Of a DNA stretch of 64,000 nt, positions 2,416 through 43,898 are shown piece after piece. A program made the position numbers and the translations under genes. Every line of letters starts with the position of its first letter. Within the stretch, counting starts at the first letter, position 1. The notes under the pieces are model-generated. The model made no database searches. It worked only from the letters and a program-made list of their open reading frames with translations, and had not been told where the DNA came from. The stretch is taken from sequence record NC_062582.1. One strand, 5' to 3'.

Positions 2416-3243
2416 TCAACGTAACCAGTTAGGTTTCCGTGGTGGAGCTTTACGCTCCCAACCAAGAGTCTTAGCCAGTTCAGTAACATCAGCACTATCG
2501 CTCTCTAAGCCAATGTTAGCACGTTTACGCGCTTCATCTTGCAAAGCCCAGAGAACGTCAGGGGTAATAACTCGTTCGGTCTCAGAGAAGCTCTCAAGAG
2601 CTGGAGAGTTATATTTGTTAGCAGTAAAGATACCACCCTCACCAACGAAGTCCCAAGTAGAGATTTCACGGGTATACTTGATACCACGCATCATGTCATC
2701 TTGAGTAATCGACCGTACAGAGAAATAAGTGTTGATCGATGGGTTATCCAAAGAATCCTGAAGGACCTGTTTAAAAGGACCAAAAGGTTTAACTTCAGCT
2801 ACTACCATTTTAACGCGTTCGCCGTTTTCGTTAACACCATCAATAATGGACAGAGAACGAATGTGTGCACATACACGGTTGTCATCAATCTGACGAATAC
2901 GGCCGAGGTACTGTGGATCGCTCATTGGTTGACGAACGACCTTACCACCCAGTAACAAATCTTGGAAAGGTTCAGGGTGTTTGAATTCAGCAAAGAGTAC
3001 GCCTTTCTTTAAACGACGCATCAAAGGAGAATCAGGAGCGAACATCGAAACGCCGCTCGCTTCATCGTAGAACATACCTGCCGAGTTCTTAGTACCGTAA
3101 CTGCCAACGACGATTGTGTAATAGCCGTCAGCAGATGGAGTAAGGATACCTTTCTTGTTGGTACCGGCAAGCATGGTGCAGCCAACAGTAACAACTGATG
3201 GCGGTGTAGGGATCTGTGGATTTGAAGACATGTTGAATCGCAT
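2416..3243 (-). CDS. prohead (head maturation) protease, phiKZ gp175/SPN3US gp245-like
   Basis: Motifs GVLFAEFKHPE (His), RIRQIDDNRVCAHI, EVKPFGP, FSVRS (Ser), TWDFVGEGGI; C-terminal ALE/GLE autocleavage-type sites; synteny; start moved to the ATG at 3243 (AAGGA RBS). Confidence 0.85.
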   Translation of the reverse strand: MRFNMSSNPQIPTPPSVVTVGCTMLAGTNKKGILTPSADGYYTIVVGSYGTKNSAGMFYDEASGVSMFAPDSPLMRRLKKGVLFAEFKHPEPFQDLLLGGKVVRQPMSDPQYLGRIRQIDDNRVCAHIRSLSIIDGVNENGERVKMVVAEVKPFGPFKQVLQDSLDNPSINTYFSVRSITQDDMMRGIKYTREISTWDFVGEGGIFTANKYNSPALESFSETERVITPDVLWALQDEARKRANIGLESDSADVTELAKTLGWERKAPPRKPNWLR

Positions 3244-19525: not shown

Positions 19526-21505
19526 ATGGTAATCGACACTAAACCAATTTGGTTGCGTCAAGCTTTCTTAGTTCCTGTCTCATTCAATCCAAAGTCATAC
19601 GGCTCTGCAACACGTCGTCGTTATGCTAACTCGGCTGCATTCAAATTTACTAACACGAGTCTTGGTGGTAGCTTTGCTATCAATATGTTACCACAGTACA
19701 CACGTTACGCTGACATCCGTCAACCGGGTAGAGGACGTAGTTATGAAGATCGATTCCAAGGTATGGGTCGATATTATTCAGAAGCACACGATGACACCAA
19801 ACAAGAAATCCACATGGCCTTTGGCGTGCCCCGCTTTAGTAGCTGGTCTGGATTCTTTACTAACTTCTTTGACCGCTATGCAGCATCTCTGGCTAACACC
19901 GGTAGTGGTAGCGATCTATGGTACAACTTGGGTAACACGGCTGGTCTATTGGTAACCTTACCATTGCAACCTTTTATCCTTGGACTTACAGGTACTGCAC
20001 GTATCTTAAGCTTTCTACAAAAGACACAACCTTCTAAATGGTTCTACTTTAAACCAACCATGCATAACTACTGGTCAGCAGTTAACACACTGGCTAACGA
20101 ATTTGCAATCGGTTTGGGGATTACTCCTTGGATGTGGGAAGACTCACAGAAACCTTTGGAAGATCCGGGTAACACAGTGGGTCCAAAAGAACTTGCTAAC
20201 ATGCACCGTATTTTCCCATCGTTCTTTAGGTCTGATGGTGGTGTGGACGTAATGGCTCTGGCTGGCGCTGCGCAGCGTCGTTCAGATGCTTCGGCAAAAT
20301 CCTTTAAGGCAATGTCCGAGAAAGCACGAACCATTGAACAACTGGCCGATGGTATTGACGCTTCTTTGAAAGAACTGGTAACCGATCCTAAACCGGGTAC
20401 AGATGCACGTACTTATTTCTTGGATTACATTAAAGTACAACAAGATAAAGTTACCGACCCGTCGGGTGTAATTGACTCTGCAAGCTTTAGTCAGTGGTCG
20501 GAACTCACAGGCATCTCTGACTTTGTAAACTCTGCACAACACGACGGTATGCAATTTGTAACCTTCCGTGCCGAGTACGCTGGCGAAGTATCTGAAAGCT
20601 TTAGTAGCCAAACAGGTGATGTGGGCGTAGCTTCTACACTTAATACAAAAGTAACTGAAGGACGATCCGCTTCGTTTAACTTCATGGGTGGTAACGTTAC
20701 TGAAGGCGTGGGCGCGGCTAAGGATGCTCTGAAGAGCGTGTTGGCTGGTGCTTTGGATTCTGTTAACTTGTCAGGTCTGGCTACACTGGCTGGTGCTGCA
20801 TTTGTAGATGTACCGGAATACTGGCAATCGTCCATGGCTTCTCTGCCAACGGCACAATACACATTCACACTGAAACCAACTTACGGTAATGTGATTTCTC
20901 GTTTCATGGAGATGTATATTCCACTGGCTATGTTGTTGCCTGCTGGTCTTCCATTGTCCGCTGGTCGTTCTGCGTATACCTCGCCGTTTATTTGTCAGAT
21001 CTTCCATAAAGGTCGAGTACAAAGACAGTTGGGTATTGTTGACTCCATTAACATCCGTCGCGGTACAGGTAACGTAGGTTGGGATGCTGAAGGTAACATG
21101 CTGGGATGTGAAGTTACTATCTCGGTTAAAGACCTTTCTAAGATCATGCACATTCCTATTAAAGGTGGTTTTGCTTCTCCTTCCTGGATTGGTACTGCCG
21201 GTCGTGCTGTTGCTGCACAGATTGGACAATCAAGTATGGGTGATGCTGGTATCGGTATTGCTTCCGCTATTACTAACGGCGCAGTATGGGATGAACAATC
21301 TCTGTTCAACGATTACGTTGCTACATTGTGTTCTCAAAGCTGGGCTGACTTGTATTACGCTGGTAAACGTTTGAACCTGAACCTTACTCGGGTAGCACAA
21401 GATTTCAAGAACTGGAAGTCACCTTCTAACTTCTTGAGCTGGGTATTGGATGGTACGATTCCACGTATTGCATCCGCAGTTGTACAAACAACTGACCGCT
21501 TCTAA
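19526..21505 (+). CDS. tail/baseplate structural protein (phiKZ gp182/SPN3US gp238-like)
   Basis: 659 aa immediately after the gp181-like gene; [26 protein letters not shown] motif. Confidence 0.7.
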
Positions 21506-21906: not shown

Positions 21907-21940
21907 TCATATTGCCTTCCTTCGGGAAGGCTTTATGCCG
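21904..21940 (+). repeat. 37-bp intergenic repeat, copy 1 (copy 2 at 61578-61614)
   Basis: TAATCATAtTGCCTTCCTTCGGGAAGGCTTTATGCCG; 36/37 identity by eye. Confidence 0.85.
21907..21940 (+). terminator. terminator of the hairpin-TTTATGCCG family
   Basis: GCCTTCC-TTCG-GGAAGGC followed by TTTATGCCG. Confidence 0.8.
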
Positions 21941-21970
21941 TCAATAGATTTTTTTCTAAATCTATATTAC
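21941..21970 (+). promoter_or_regulatory. putative early (vRNAP) promoter
   Basis: TCAATAGATTTTTTTCTAAATCTATATTAC; TATATTAC core matches the phiKZ early promoter consensus; motif recurs 5 times. Confidence 0.75.
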
Positions 21971-22008: not shown

Positions 22009-22374
22009 ATGAATACTAAAGTATCTGATCTGATTTTTGAAAAACTAGAGAGTAGTCTTCTTAATTGGTGGGACTCACTGTTCCCTGGCGAACCAGAACC
22101 TACCTACAGTTCTGCTATGGAGAAATCCATTTACAACATGTGTAAGGAGTTTGCATACAAGGACAGTAGGAAGTTTATCTTTGAAGGTTTGCATAAAGCT
22201 TTTAAAGAAACAATCGAAGCTAACAAACGTACACCTGCGCGTATCCACCGTGAACTACGTCGGGTTATTTATCGTGACGTAGCTAAGATTGAAAATACCG
22301 AAGTACGCGATAATGTGATACTACAATATTCCCTGATCTACAACCTAAACCAAACTGAAGGAAATACCAAATGA
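22009..22374 (+). CDS. hypothetical protein
   Basis: 121 aa; first gene after the promoter. Confidence 0.7.
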   Translation: MNTKVSDLIFEKLESSLLNWWDSLFPGEPEPTYSSAMEKSIYNMCKEFAYKDSRKFIFEGLHKAFKETIEANKRTPARIHRELRRVIYRDVAKIENTEVRDNVILQYSLIYNLNQTEGNTK

Positions 22375-22883
22375 AAAATCTCATCATGCGTTTGATTGTA
22401 AAACTGTTCGGTCTGCAATACGTTAACTACTTCGTTAAGTTTGAACAAACTGATGAAGAGCGTACCAAAGAAGCAATGGATTACTTGATCAGCGAAGGTT
22501 CACATTTCCGTGTACTGCCTGAGAACTACGAAGCGTTCTATAAAGAACTCATTACGGGTTCTAAAGAAGATAAGGTATGGCGTTCGGTATTGTTCCGTAA
22601 AGCTCTTGATACCGTCTCTAAAGAAGAGTCGTATCAACTCGCTGCACACATTCTGTTGGCACCTTACGCACAAGGTACCAGCGATTGGCCAGAACAGATC
22701 TTCTTTAAAGCTAACCAGCTGGCAGCTAATAAGTTGGTTGTTCCAGTTCCGATGCTGGGTTACGTAAAGATCCTGACCGAGGCATTGATTGAAGTATGTC
22801 CAGCACTTCCTATCGACGTGGCACGTGCCGTAGCGTTCAGTGTTTACCACACTAACAAATTCTTTAAAGGGGTTAAATCTTGA
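22371..22883 (+). CDS. hypothetical protein
   Basis: 170 aa; ATGA overlap. Confidence 0.7.
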   Translation: MKNLIMRLIVKLFGLQYVNYFVKFEQTDEERTKEAMDYLISEGSHFRVLPENYEAFYKELITGSKEDKVWRSVLFRKALDTVSKEESYQLAAHILLAPYAQGTSDWPEQIFFKANQLAANKLVVPVPMLGYVKILTEALIEVCPALPIDVARAVAFSVYHTNKFFKGVKS

Positions 22884-23332
22884 AACGATTCGTACTTTGG
22901 TTCATCACTAAGTACTTGAGCAGTTCGGATATCGTAGACGCTCTGTTGGATCGATGGCCTGCTAAAGACCAAGCTAATTTCTACCTGCGGGGTCTTTTCA
23001 TTAAGTACCGAAACTCTCCTGCTGATGTACGTGAAGTTATTCTACGGGCTTTAAACGATTACAATTTTCATGATACCCCATTGAAGCCAATTCATTATGA
23101 GGTAATGATTAAACGTATATTGACTACTGCCCAACCTTTTACATCTCCTAGTACTTTAGTGAACGCTTTGGTATGGGACGCACAAATTGGGCGTAATGCT
23201 AATCTCAACTATATCAAATACAACGCGTACTTGACTAATGTTGTGAGAAAAACCCTGGGTGTTCTTTCGACCACCGACGTACAATTGATTGTAGCCCTCC
23301 TGAAAAAGCGAGTAGAAAATGAATGCGAGTGA
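22880..23332 (+). CDS. hypothetical protein
   Basis: 150 aa; TTGA overlap; AAGGGG RBS. Confidence 0.65.
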   Translation: MKRFVLWFITKYLSSSDIVDALLDRWPAKDQANFYLRGLFIKYRNSPADVREVILRALNDYNFHDTPLKPIHYEVMIKRILTTAQPFTSPSTLVNALVWDAQIGRNANLNYIKYNAYLTNVVRKTLGVLSTTDVQLIVALLKKRVENECE

Positions 23333-23930
23333 AGTAGCCCTGAACTGGGCAAAGGGTCTTGAAGAACATCAAGACGGTGTAGCACAGCACGTAGATGCAA
23401 AAGAAGTTAAAGCCCACATTGATATCGATGATGTAGATAAGAACGATATCAGCGATGTTGAAGATACCGAAACCAAGAACATCAAAGATGGTGGTGACGA
23501 CGTTAAAGTAGCAGCTGGTGATAAAGACATCTCGGTTGAAGACTTTGATACAACTACCAGCTCTGCCAATGGCGGCGGTAAAGAGATCGATGCACTGGCT
23601 ATTGATGAAGCTACTGGTCTACCACGTCGTTACGTTATCAGCGGGTTTAATGCTGCTAACAACTCGGCACTGGAAGAAGGTGATAATGCAACCCAACTGG
23701 CAATCGTATTGCAGAACGGTACTATCCCTGAAGCGGGTTTGAATGGTGTCACGGCTGAAGACCTGTTGAAAGTATGTCGCGAGATCTTTACCTGTTATCA
23801 GGAATCGAAGTTTGCTTGCGAAGAAAACGCTGAAGCCTTGGAACACATTAATGGTGCTCTGGCTGCTCAAGCTAAACGTATGGAACGTCGTGCTAAAGAG
23901 GGTACCGAAGGTACTCACGAAGGCAACTGA
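23319..23930 (+). CDS. tad1: Tad1-like anti-defence sponge protein with acidic N-terminal extension
   Basis: C-terminal about 115 aa (RRYVISG..IVLQNG..NGVTAEDLL..YQESKFACEENAEALEH..KRMERRAKEGTEGT) matches the Tad1 pattern (HEYVIKS..IKFQKG..HGVIDSDLL..FQAGPFSSRENACALTH..RRVEDRIERNVLGT) as recalled from memory. Confidence 0.75.
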   Translation: MNASEVALNWAKGLEEHQDGVAQHVDAKEVKAHIDIDDVDKNDISDVEDTETKNIKDGGDDVKVAAGDKDISVEDFDTTTSSANGGGKEIDALAIDEATGLPRRYVISGFNAANNSALEEGDNATQLAIVLQNGTIPEAGLNGVTAEDLLKVCREIFTCYQESKFACEENAEALEHINGALAAQAKRMERRAKEGTEGTHEGN

Positions 23931-23963
23931 CATAAGCCCCCTCCTGCGGGAGGGGATTTATTT
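23931..23963 (+). terminator. intrinsic terminator
   Basis: CCCCTCC-TGCG-GGAGGGG followed by ATTTATTT. Confidence 0.7.
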
Positions 23964-23977
23964 CGCGAGGGTTAATC

Positions 23978-24331: not shown

Positions 24332-24361
24332 TCAATAGATTTTATTTGAAATCTATATTAC
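24332..24361 (+). promoter_or_regulatory. putative early promoter
   Basis: TCAATAGATTTTATTTGAAATCTATATTAC. Confidence 0.75.
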
Positions 24362-24663: not shown

Positions 24664-25611
24664 ATGCCTACTAAACATCAAGTTGACTATTCTAAATTTG
24701 ACGGGTTATCGACTGAAACTCTCGAAGAGTTGTGTAAAAACGCACAGCGTACATTGGCTAAACGGCATAGAGAAGTTAAGCTGTCCCGTGCTATAGAACC
24801 ATTCGATAGTACTAAGCAACGCTACAGTGAACTGGTTGAGCGATTCGGAGAACCAGAGAAAGTTGCCGCATCTGTTGAGCAAGGAAGTATCCTCGAACAC
24901 ACCCTAATTAAGAAAACTGAAGAGAGCCCAAAAGAAATGGTACATCATGTACGTCCTTCCCCGTTGACATCTCCTGCCACCGGCCCAATTCCGATTATTC
25001 CGGTATTGACACATGGCACAGAAGAATTTTTCGTTGATAAAGGTGACATCAGCTACGTAAAACATAGTCGTGGTGTAAGTTATCAGACTGGTCCACTGGT
25101 TGTAGGTAAAGCTATTAATCTTTACGGGCTGTCTCAAGCTAATGACTTTATTGCCGCCGGTGACCTTGACATAGCTAGTACTGTTTCACCCGACGCATCA
25201 CTGTCCGCAATTTACATTAACGTTCGCGGTAGTGTACTGCGTTATGACATTAGTGGTTGGGACGAAACTGCCGGTGTTGCAATGGTGGCTGGTAGCGAAC
25301 GTGGTCTGAACTTCTTGTTCCGTACCGATCGATTCATCATTGGTGAAAGTTCCCGCGATGTTTACGGCGTAGCTCCAGACTGGGTTCGCCAACTGCACCT
25401 CGCCGATCTCGCCATTAGTCTTCGTGTCAATTTCTCAGGTTCTCTGCAAACAACCAGAGGCACTGTTGAGTTTGGTACTGGAAAAGTCGAAGTCTTGACC
25501 GTAGATGTTTTCAATACGAGTACAAGTGAAAAACTAAAGTCAGTAGTAGGTTCTCTGTTCGATGATATCAGTATCGTTGGCTATGAACTTGATGCTACTT
25601 TCACTAACTAA
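24664..25611 (+). CDS. protein containing a major-capsid-protein-like internal domain
   Basis: From about aa 110: IIPV..FFVD..TGPLVVGKAINLYGLSQ..LSAIYINV..GYELDATFTN resembles the central segment of phiKZ gp120-type capsid proteins. Confidence 0.6.
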   Translation: MPTKHQVDYSKFDGLSTETLEELCKNAQRTLAKRHREVKLSRAIEPFDSTKQRYSELVERFGEPEKVAASVEQGSILEHTLIKKTEESPKEMVHHVRPSPLTSPATGPIPIIPVLTHGTEEFFVDKGDISYVKHSRGVSYQTGPLVVGKAINLYGLSQANDFIAAGDLDIASTVSPDASLSAIYINVRGSVLRYDISGWDETAGVAMVAGSERGLNFLFRTDRFIIGESSRDVYGVAPDWVRQLHLADLAISLRVNFSGSLQTTRGTVEFGTGKVEVLTVDVFNTSTSEKLKSVVGSLFDDISIVGYELDATFTN

Positions 25612-39891: not shown

Positions 39892-39924
39892 TCAATAGAT
39901 TTTTTTCTAAATCTATATTACGTA
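39880..39924 (+). repeat. 45-bp exact repeat of 21929-21973 (terminator tail plus promoter)
   Basis: GGCTTTATGCCGTCAATAGATTTTTTTCTAAATCTATATTACGTA at both sites. Confidence 0.85.
39892..39921 (+). promoter_or_regulatory. putative early promoter
   Basis: TCAATAGATTTTTTTCTAAATCTATATTAC, identical to the copy at 21941. Confidence 0.75.
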
Positions 39925-43869: not shown

Positions 43870-43898
43870 CAATAGAAAAAGTTCTAAATCTATATAAC
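43870..43898 (+). promoter_or_regulatory. putative early promoter (variant)
   Basis: CAATAGAAAAAGTTCTAAATCTATATAAC. Confidence 0.6.

Follow-up and report, generated by a model that had tools for sequence, protein, structure and literature searches.

The structurally characterised Tad1 sponges CbTad1 (Protein Data Bank (PDB) entries 7UAV, 7UAW and 8SMD) and CmTad1 (8KBB-D) are proteins of about 125–130 aa that carry no N-terminal extension, assemble into hexamers and bind cyclic triadenylate (cA3) and cyclic AMP-AMP-GMP (cAAG) via R90/T97. According to the source paper, the characterised members originate from Clostridium prophages (CbTad1 and CmTad1) and the Bacillus phage SBSphiJ7, while ColiTad1 is named by organism only. 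It was demonstrated that mutation of F82/N92 and of R109/R113 in CbTad1 abolishes the binding of glycocyclic ADP-ribose (gcADPR) and of 2′,3′-cyclic GMP-AMP (2′,3′-cGAMP). Cyclic trinucleotides are bound at a site formed by R90/T97 in CbTad1 and by R88/T95 in CmTad1, and Li et al. found only 6% of Tad1 homologues to be substituted there; even so, as a feature present in about 94% of homologues, this site is not a founding one of the family. The CmTad1 hexamer depends on contacts made by Q98, E99, M102, W103 and K106, and the five-fold alanine mutant is a dimer that has lost cA3 binding. Here, a stretch of 64,000 nucleotides of sequence record NC_062582.1 (hereafter, the window) was analysed, with emphasis on the gene gp271. 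The source is the phiKZ-like Pseudomonas phage Phabio, a jumbo phage (309 kb) of Pseudomonas fluorescens SBW25 related to phiKZ and 201phi2-1; positions are those of the window, to which 186000 is added to obtain genome coordinates.

In phiKZ, gp184 was described as a minor capsid protein of the vertex-binding complex that is cleaved by the gp175 head protease (PMC11297242), and it is seen in the capsid structure 8Y6V as chain I. This protein co-fractionates with inner-body proteins, and its injection was validated by western blot using FLAG-tagged virions and translation-blocked cells (PMC10449902). Additionally, Tad1 was the sole anti-defence gene detected in phiKZ by AntiDefenseFinder (PMC11724313). 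A 2025 transposon study, which uses the name gp184/Tad1 and found orf184 to be non-essential by transposon sequencing, described the N-terminus as wedged in the capsid and the C-terminus as released by the head protease and then injected (bioRxiv 2025.11.23.690004), and the same account is repeated in a 2026 review (PMC13282480). The principle of a packaged sponge is already published for phiKZ gp184, and the Phabio gene is a new example of it rather than a new idea. In phage T4, internal proteins such as internal protein I (IPI) have an N-terminal targeting region or propeptide that takes them into the prohead, undergo trimming after Glu by the head protease and are ejected with the DNA. This general head-loading strategy, common to the T4 internal proteins and to phiKZ inner-body and ejected proteins (gp93 and others), would be shared by gp271; however, the cargo domains are unrelated, IPI blocking a restriction enzyme directly, whereas the cargo of gp271 is predicted to be a small-molecule sponge.

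From its sequence, gp271 is a previously unannotated member of the Tad1 family and the orthologue of phiKZ gp184 and 201phi2-1 gp280. The open reading frame (ORF) starts with an ATG at 23319, overlapping the 3′ end of gp270, and ends with a TGA at 23930; its 203-aa product is 100% identical to YP_010348240.1, labelled ‘hypothetical protein’ in the record, and matches PHROG 23843 along its full length. We consider it likely that gp271, as the gp184/Tad1 orthologue, is a packaged, protease-trimmed sponge for gcADPR and/or cyclic dinucleotides that is co-ejected with the DNA. The features of the gene are the following:

23319–23930, + strand: gp271 coding sequence (203 aa plus stop), putative Tad1-family sponge precursor, assigned from the ORF, record identity, PHROG 23843, PDB sequence matches and synteny.
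23319–23363, + strand: residues 1–15, predicted N-terminal helix ending in G13-L14-E15, a predicted head-protease site.
23364–23540, + strand: residues 16–74, acidic, conserved and predicted to be disordered, ending in S72-V73-E74, a second predicted protease site.
23541–23927, + strand: residues 75–203, Tad1-fold domain with a beta-sheet and a two-helix hairpin, predicted mature sponge of 129 aa.
23796–23798 (Y160), 23826–23828 (N170), 23877–23879 (R187) and 23889–23891 (R191), + strand: pocket codons mapped from CbTad1.
23820–23822 (E168), together with E175, + strand: substituted cyclic-trinucleotide site, by residue mapping to CbTad1/CmTad1.

The initial annotation had described the C-terminal stretch of about 115 aa as Tad1-like and had proposed a hidden Markov model (HMM) or Foldseek comparison against Tad1 as a check; this comparison was run, and it returned Tad1 by sequence profile as well as by structure. 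In a phmmer search against PDB sequences, the top match was phiKZ gp184 (8y6v_I, E 8e-32, gp271 residues 86–203), after which only Tad1 chains were found, at E 4e-7 to 2e-5 (CmTad1 8kbb at 3.9e-7, CbTad1 at 1.2e-5). A profile built from 45 sequences matched gp184 at E 2.8e-49, Tad1 8kbb at 3.4e-13 and Tad1 7uav at 2.7e-8. The AlphaFold2 model of gp271, built on the 45-sequence alignment, reached a predicted local distance difference test (pLDDT) score above 85 across most of residues 90–195 and contains strands at 78–81, 89–95, 102–108 and 126–131 and helices at 146–162 and 168–194, in the arrangement typical of Tad1, with an antiparallel beta-sheet on the N-terminal side and a pair of long antiparallel helices behind it. 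When this model was compared with the PDB by Foldseek, all 20 significant matches were CbTad1 or CmTad1 (probability 1.00, template-modelling score by target 0.64–0.78). In the sequence searches, the helical hairpin aligned without gaps with both proteins. The Tad1 fold spans residues 78 to 203 approximately, and the assignment of the C-terminal part of gp271 to Tad1 is confirmed by sequence and predicted fold. On the other hand, Pfam hmmscan gave no significant family for the whole of gp271, its C-terminal part, phiKZ gp184 or 201phi2-1 gp280, and PADLOC gave no match for gp271.

The residues that determine ligand binding in CbTad1 can be located in gp271 through the alignment. F82, N92, R109 and R113 correspond to Y160, N170, R187 and R191, and, among 193 relatives, almost every sequence has an aromatic residue at the first position (Leu or His in a few), N170 is invariant and both arginines are nearly so. 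As read from these residues, the gcADPR/dinucleotide pocket is intact in gp271. At the cyclic-trinucleotide site, the equivalents are E168 and E175, and in the clade the first position is E, Q or A and never R. Arg at this site is also rare among the 150 nearest representative clusters (7 of the 89 short ones), which places Phabio within a sizeable sub-branch with this property that extends beyond jumbo phages. The CmTad1 hexamer contacts correspond to N178, G179, A182, A183 and K186, where A182/A183 reproduce the M102A/W103A part of the hexamer-breaking mutant. The substitutions pointed out in the initial annotation, from SRENA to C167-E168-E169-N170-A171 and from WMNRR to A183-Q184-A185-K186-R187, are real in the ungapped CbTad1 alignment; its suggestion that they may change ligand specificity would hold as far as the cyclic-trinucleotide-binding Arg and the hexamer-interface Trp are affected, but would not extend to the gcADPR pocket, which appears to be untouched.

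Regarding the oligomeric state, a two-copy co-fold of residues 75–203 scored 0.91 versus 0.00 for the best of three controls, a mark attained by 21 of 30 proteins whose solved structure is a pair of one chain and by 0 of 23 whose structure is a single chain, although this pass may reflect memory of solved Tad1 dimers and may indicate likeness only. Considering sequence and model together, gp271 is predicted to act as a dimer that sequesters gcADPR and/or cyclic dinucleotides and does not bind cA3. It would therefore share with CbTad1 and CmTad1 the fold and the conserved pocket residues, as well as the predicted dimer, and differ from the characterised members in E168/E175 at the trinucleotide site, in A182/A183 at the M102/W103 contact, in the 74-aa acidic extension and in belonging to a virion-packaged lineage. 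It is already known that wild-type phiKZ loses some DNA to the cA3-dependent NucC cyclic oligonucleotide-based anti-phage signalling system (CBASS), and that Acb2 provided in trans rescues its nlp1 mutant. The lost trinucleotide site is consistent with the need of phiKZ for Nlp1, or for Acb2 in trans, against this system.

The comparison with its orthologues connects gp271 to proteins of the virion. Phabio, 201phi2-1 and phiKZ have in common a gene order consisting of the giant tail lysin (phiKZ gp181), the gp182 homologue, small genes, the sponge gene, more small genes and the thymidylate kinase (gp188), so that gp271 and phiKZ gp184 occupy the same position between the gp181/gp182 homologues and the thymidylate kinase gene; both orthology and a conserved neighbourhood with this known head protein were found for gp271. 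The two C-terminal Tad1 domains share 46% identity and both show the C-E-E-N and A-for-W substitutions, homology is also seen in the first 40 residues or so, which contain an [S/G]-L-E site, an [S/G]-x-E triplet lies just ahead of the domain in both proteins, and both phages encode the cognate protease. However, the Phabio protein is 27 aa shorter and presents an acidic disordered segment in place of the beta-meander insert of gp184. The closest characterised relative is 201phi2-1 gp280 (199 aa, 55% identity over the full length, same synteny), which likewise has an acidic N-terminus lacking the beta insert and whose annotation notes its identification by mass spectrometry.

In residues 1–74 of gp271, 21 of 74 positions are D or E (28%) and the net charge is −13, which makes this N-terminus the second most acidic among the 328 Phabio ORFs. 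The most acidic one belongs to a 905-aa ORF outside the window (genome 101314–104031, + strand), with 47% D/E and a net charge of −30 in its first 74 residues; this ORF is a candidate for a further propeptide-bearing head or inner-body protein. In the AlphaFold2 model of gp271, a helix at 3–16 is followed by predicted disorder, with pLDDT below 50 for residues 17–77. Mean column conservation within the clade was 0.65 for residues 1–74 versus 0.74 for the Tad1 domain (0.67 for residues 16–74), and W10, E15, G20, A22, D26, D38-V39-D40, E51 and D57-G58 are nearly invariant. Judged by this conservation, the N-terminal part is neither a drifting tail nor mere low complexity, so that, of its initial description as a D/E-rich low-complexity stretch, the acidity stands and the low complexity is not the whole account.

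The triplets ASE (3–5), GLE (13–15), AKE (27–29), SVE (72–74) and GKE (87–89) are present, which includes all four motifs listed initially, although only two of those four proved to be conserved. When counted in the 45 members of the Phabio/201phi2-1 clade, [S/A/G]-x-E is kept in 44 at G13-L14-E15 and again in 44 at S72-V73-E74, against 9 at ASE5 and 4 at GKE89. At the place equivalent to SVE74, about 30 residues ahead of the invariant Arg of the domain, the phiKZ-like representatives P0046–P0051 have an [S/G/A]-x-E triplet, and phiKZ gp184 itself has G-H-E before H-F-D-E-N-G. An enzyme expected to act on such sites is encoded in the same window:

2419–3195, − strand (genome 188419–189195): orthologue of gp175, the head maturation protease of phiKZ (61% identity).

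The maturation site of the phiKZ capsid protein, G-L-E163|N164, aligns with I-G-L-E157|N-Y-N-E-K of the Phabio capsid protein, and GLE15 of gp271 is the same tripeptide as in this GLE|N site. Since the capsid-protein site is conserved, the Phabio head protease very probably has the same specificity as phiKZ gp175, and it is the enzyme expected to process gp271. Both a cognate gp175-type protease and conserved [S/A/G]-x-E triplets upstream of the predicted cargo domain were therefore found in Phabio by sequence comparison. The most probable cuts are predicted after E15 and E74, and residues 16–74 are likely to represent a propeptide or targeting region. A cut after E74 would free residues 75–203, whose 129 aa correspond to the canonical size of Tad1 and keep all strands. 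GKE89 was considered and rejected as a cleavage site, because cleavage there would cut within the first strands and remove part of the sheet, apart from its low conservation; A-x-E119, A-C-E168 and G-T-E197 were likewise discarded, as they lie within well-ordered parts of the domain.

The homology and predicted fold, the syntenic orthology, the occurrence of the protease gene and the conserved motifs and pocket, together with the assumption that Phabio behaves like phiKZ, lead us to infer the following pathway. gp271 would be made as a 203-aa precursor, which the conserved acidic N-terminal part of about 74 aa would bring into the prohead, where the gp175-like head protease would cut it after [S/A/G]-x-E, most probably at GLE15 and SVE74. 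The freed 129-aa Tad1-fold domain would then travel in the head and be ejected along with the DNA. In the new host, the dimeric domain would sequester Thoeris gcADPR and/or CBASS cyclic dinucleotides through the Y160/N170/R187/R191 pocket, both ahead of the first phage gene expression and while it proceeds. In contrast to the characterised Tad1 proteins, the domain would probably neither form the hexamer nor bind cyclic trinucleotides. The proposal of the initial annotation that this sponge is packaged, matured and ejected gains support by analogy with the orthologues, gp184 being cleaved and injected and gp280 detected by mass spectrometry.

Several points weigh against this pathway. Virion location, cleavage and injection come from the literature on the orthologues, and a literature search found no report measuring ligand binding by any jumbo-phage Tad1, whose label rests on HMM homology. 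The [S/A/G]-x-E triplet is common in the Glu-rich gp271, occurring 10 times, 5 of them inside the folded domain. The 34-residue beta-meander, the only part of gp184 resolved in the phiKZ capsid, is missing from gp271, and an early-type promoter motif ahead of the operon suggests that gp271 may act mainly as an early-expressed cytoplasmic sponge. Additionally, the family Acb2_Tad1_hairpin (PF24729) stayed below significance for gp271 in direct scans, although PF24729.3 is given for the entire clade in a precomputed table. Searched against the Phabio genome, PF24729.2 gave no match at E ≤ 0.001, a result of little weight because the control genomes were also silent, and PF24729 matched 1 of 37 N-extended relatives. 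This family model misses most of the jumbo-phage Tad1 branch, though the PDB-sequence and fold searches are unambiguous.

The absence of the capsid wedge was further characterised. In the alignment, an insert of about 45 residues is present in phiKZ gp184 and in the P0046/48/49/50 group and missing from Phabio gp271 and 201phi2-1 gp280. In the model of P0048, which is 49% identical to gp184, this insert is a confident three-stranded meander at residues 69–86, and Foldseek with this model matched 8y6v_I over 30 aligned columns (root-mean-square deviation 1.3 Å, 37% identity), whereas with the Phabio gp271 model 8y6v_I was not matched. Chain I of 8y6v comprises only 34 modelled residues. From these models, the sole ordered part of gp184 in the phiKZ capsid is almost certainly the beta-meander wedge, an assignment made because of the 37% identity, the beta content described in the capsid paper and the lack of an 8y6v_I match for Phabio, as Foldseek prints no aligned range. 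With an acidic disordered segment at this place, gp271 is probably cargo rather than a capsid brace.

The best surviving alternative, which we nevertheless regard as unlikely, is that Phabio does not package gp271 but expresses it early as a cytoplasmic sponge, and that the acidic N-terminus serves solubility, tethering or a second inhibitory or DNA-mimic function rather than being a propeptide. Part of its support comes from the transcriptional organisation of the locus:

22009–23332, + strand: gp268, gp269 and gp270, three small genes whose frames abut or overlap one another and gp271, with no PHROG or Pfam match.
21916–21933, + strand: terminator-like hairpin GCCTTCC-TTCG-GGAAGGC followed by TTTAT, directly 3′ of gp267, separating gp267 from gp268–gp271.
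21943–21970, + strand: promoter-like element AATAGATTTTTTTCTAAATCTATATTAC, AT-rich and partly palindromic, just 5′ of gp268–gp271 and past the gp267 hairpin.
23938–23965, + strand: intrinsic terminator-like hairpin CCCCTCC-TGCG-GGAGGGG (23938–23955) with a T-rich tail, 8 nt past the gp271 stop.

Because the reading frames abut or overlap with no internal gaps, gp268–gp270 are presumably co-transcribed with gp271. The AATAGATTTTTTTCTAAATCTATATTAC element opens with 9 bases whose reverse complement starts 15 nt on; elements of this type also occur at 24334–24361 and 39894–39921 (+ strand), with about 35 nt conserved around them, and weaker copies at 43871 and 45958. Genome-wide, the element, TCAATAGATTTTTTTCTAAATCTATATTACGTA, of about 35 nt, is AT-rich with a 9-bp inverted repeat, has about 11 copies, all on the + strand, and usually stands directly after a terminator hairpin ending in GGCTTTATGCCG. 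Previous studies demonstrated that the early promoters of phiKZ and 201phi2-1 have an extended, well-conserved AT-rich consensus, and that middle and late promoters have only the short motifs AAanTTACc and TATG (PMC4666361; PMC11512511). Judged from its sequence, the TCAATAGATTTTTTTCTAAATCTATATTACGTA element probably represents the early promoters of Phabio. A search of sequencing runs returned metagenomic or DNA sets only, and none with RNA-seq from Phabio-infected cells. A scan for sigma-70-type promoters found fewer sites than in shuffled sequences and is irrelevant here, because Phabio has its own polymerases. The early-type motif ahead of the operon and the terminator behind gp271, the three co-directed small genes without structural match, and the absence of the phiKZ wedge segment would all fit an unpackaged sponge. 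However, 201phi2-1 gp280, of the same wedge-less architecture, appears in the virion proteome annotation as detected by mass spectrometry, two protease-type motifs lie at fixed positions in nearly all relatives, and the N-terminal 40 residues are homologous to those of gp184, a proven head protein. Early or middle expression is also compatible with packaging, since several 201phi2-1 virion genes use middle promoters (PMC11512511), and the gp280 operon is itself preceded by AAAAATTAC, a middle-type motif, in contrast to the early-type element in Phabio. The initial annotation had taken the position in an apparent early operon as an argument against packaging; the early-type motif was indeed found, but, considering these promoters and the fact that the orthologues are virion proteins, it is not a strong argument and does not refute packaging. 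Dual deployment of gp271, as packaged cargo and as early-expressed protein, is a possibility suggested by these motifs.

Even less probable, in our judgement, is that gp271 is chiefly a structural minor capsid protein whose Tad1-like fold was recruited for capsid assembly or stability and has lost its sponge activity. The place of phiKZ gp184 in the vertex-binding complex, the loss of the trinucleotide site and hexamer interface found in most Tad1 proteins, and the lack of direct binding data for the gp271 clade in the literature search would agree with such a role. On the other hand, a purely structural role does not predict the conservation of the four pocket residues across the clade and the 150 nearest clusters, the 34 residues of gp184 ordered in the phiKZ capsid lie outside the Tad1 domain and are absent from gp271, and gp184 is both non-essential and injected. 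Finally, that gp271 could be an anti-CBASS sponge of the Acb2 type rather than Tad1 is very improbable: although Acb2 and Tad1 have in common the helical hairpin (joint Pfam family PF24729) and, as we take it, a C-terminal ‘EGTEGT’ lid-like motif, no Acb2 chain was found in the PDB sequence searches (phmmer E up to 10, profile E up to 1) or among the significant Foldseek matches, all of which were Tad1, and the N-terminal beta-sheet typical of Tad1 is predicted.

The Tad1 family was also considered more widely. The exhaustive search gave 1869 representative clusters at E ≤ 0.001. Among 192 collected sequences, the Tad1 domain lies at the very C-terminus in 169, and 39 have more than 80 residues ahead of it. 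Five of the ten longest sequences have an N-terminal match to Pfam PhiKZ_MCP (PF25620) at profile positions of about 135–370, a region that represents the insertion (I) domain of the capsid protein, residues 248–472 of phiKZ gp120; thus, in five representative clusters from uncultured phages, an I-domain module is fused N-terminally to the Tad1 domain. One of these fusion proteins (P0139, L006:8001–9455), found on at least 10 contigs, is encoded by a metagenomic contig of 252 kb; Phabio gp274 is matched by its N-terminal part (E 6e-9) and gp271 by its C-terminal part (E 6e-22). The gene that provides the first match lies close to the sponge gene:

24664–25611, + strand: gp274, 315 aa, free-standing I-domain paralogue (PF25620 positions 145–364), three genes 3′ of gp271.

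gp274 is labelled ‘major head protein’ in the record, yet it is a paralogue of the I domain only, the real capsid gene lying at genome 127966–130197; gp282 of 201phi2-1, which lies at the same place, also gives a weak match. The 133-aa gene that follows the P0139 fusion is not homologous to Phabio gp275. A ‘Rosetta-stone’ reading of the fusion would hint, from sequence, at a shared site of action for the sponge and the I-domain paralogue, and it is only a hint. Upstream of gp271, gp266 (19526–21505, + strand, 659 aa), hypothetical in the Phabio record, has a match in PHROG 3181 and a weak one in a ‘virion structural protein’ PHROG; its homologues are phiKZ gp182 and 201phi2-1 gp277, of which the latter was found by mass spectrometry.

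A more speculative proposal, which we hold only tentatively, is that jumbo-phage Tad1 is a distinct variant, namely a pre-loaded, protease-released, dimeric sponge for gcADPR and dinucleotides only, whose head loading evolved several times through interchangeable N-terminal modules, the Phabio gene being deployed twice, packaged and from its early promoter. Within this proposal, the candidate loading modules would be the acidic propeptide in Phabio and 201phi2-1, the beta-meander capsid wedge in phiKZ and the I-domain paralogue in the uncultured 252-kb phage and four other clusters.

Thoeris and CBASS signalling acts within minutes, and a ready-made sponge arriving with the DNA would close the gap before phage gene expression. 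In this context, the Phabio gene mainly extends the packaged-sponge principle to one more genus and to a soil Pseudomonas as host, and one addition is the concrete precursor map with its predicted cuts after E15 and E74. For annotation, pipelines that depend on PF24729 will under-call jumbo-phage Tad1. The replacement of the trinucleotide and hexamer residues in the whole jumbo-phage branch predicts a narrower ligand range, which would explain the partial exposure of phiKZ to cA3/NucC CBASS. Additionally, since the head-loading module differs among phiKZ, the Phabio/201phi2-1 group and the I-domain fusions, these sponges represent a good system to study how cargo is addressed to the capsid interior.

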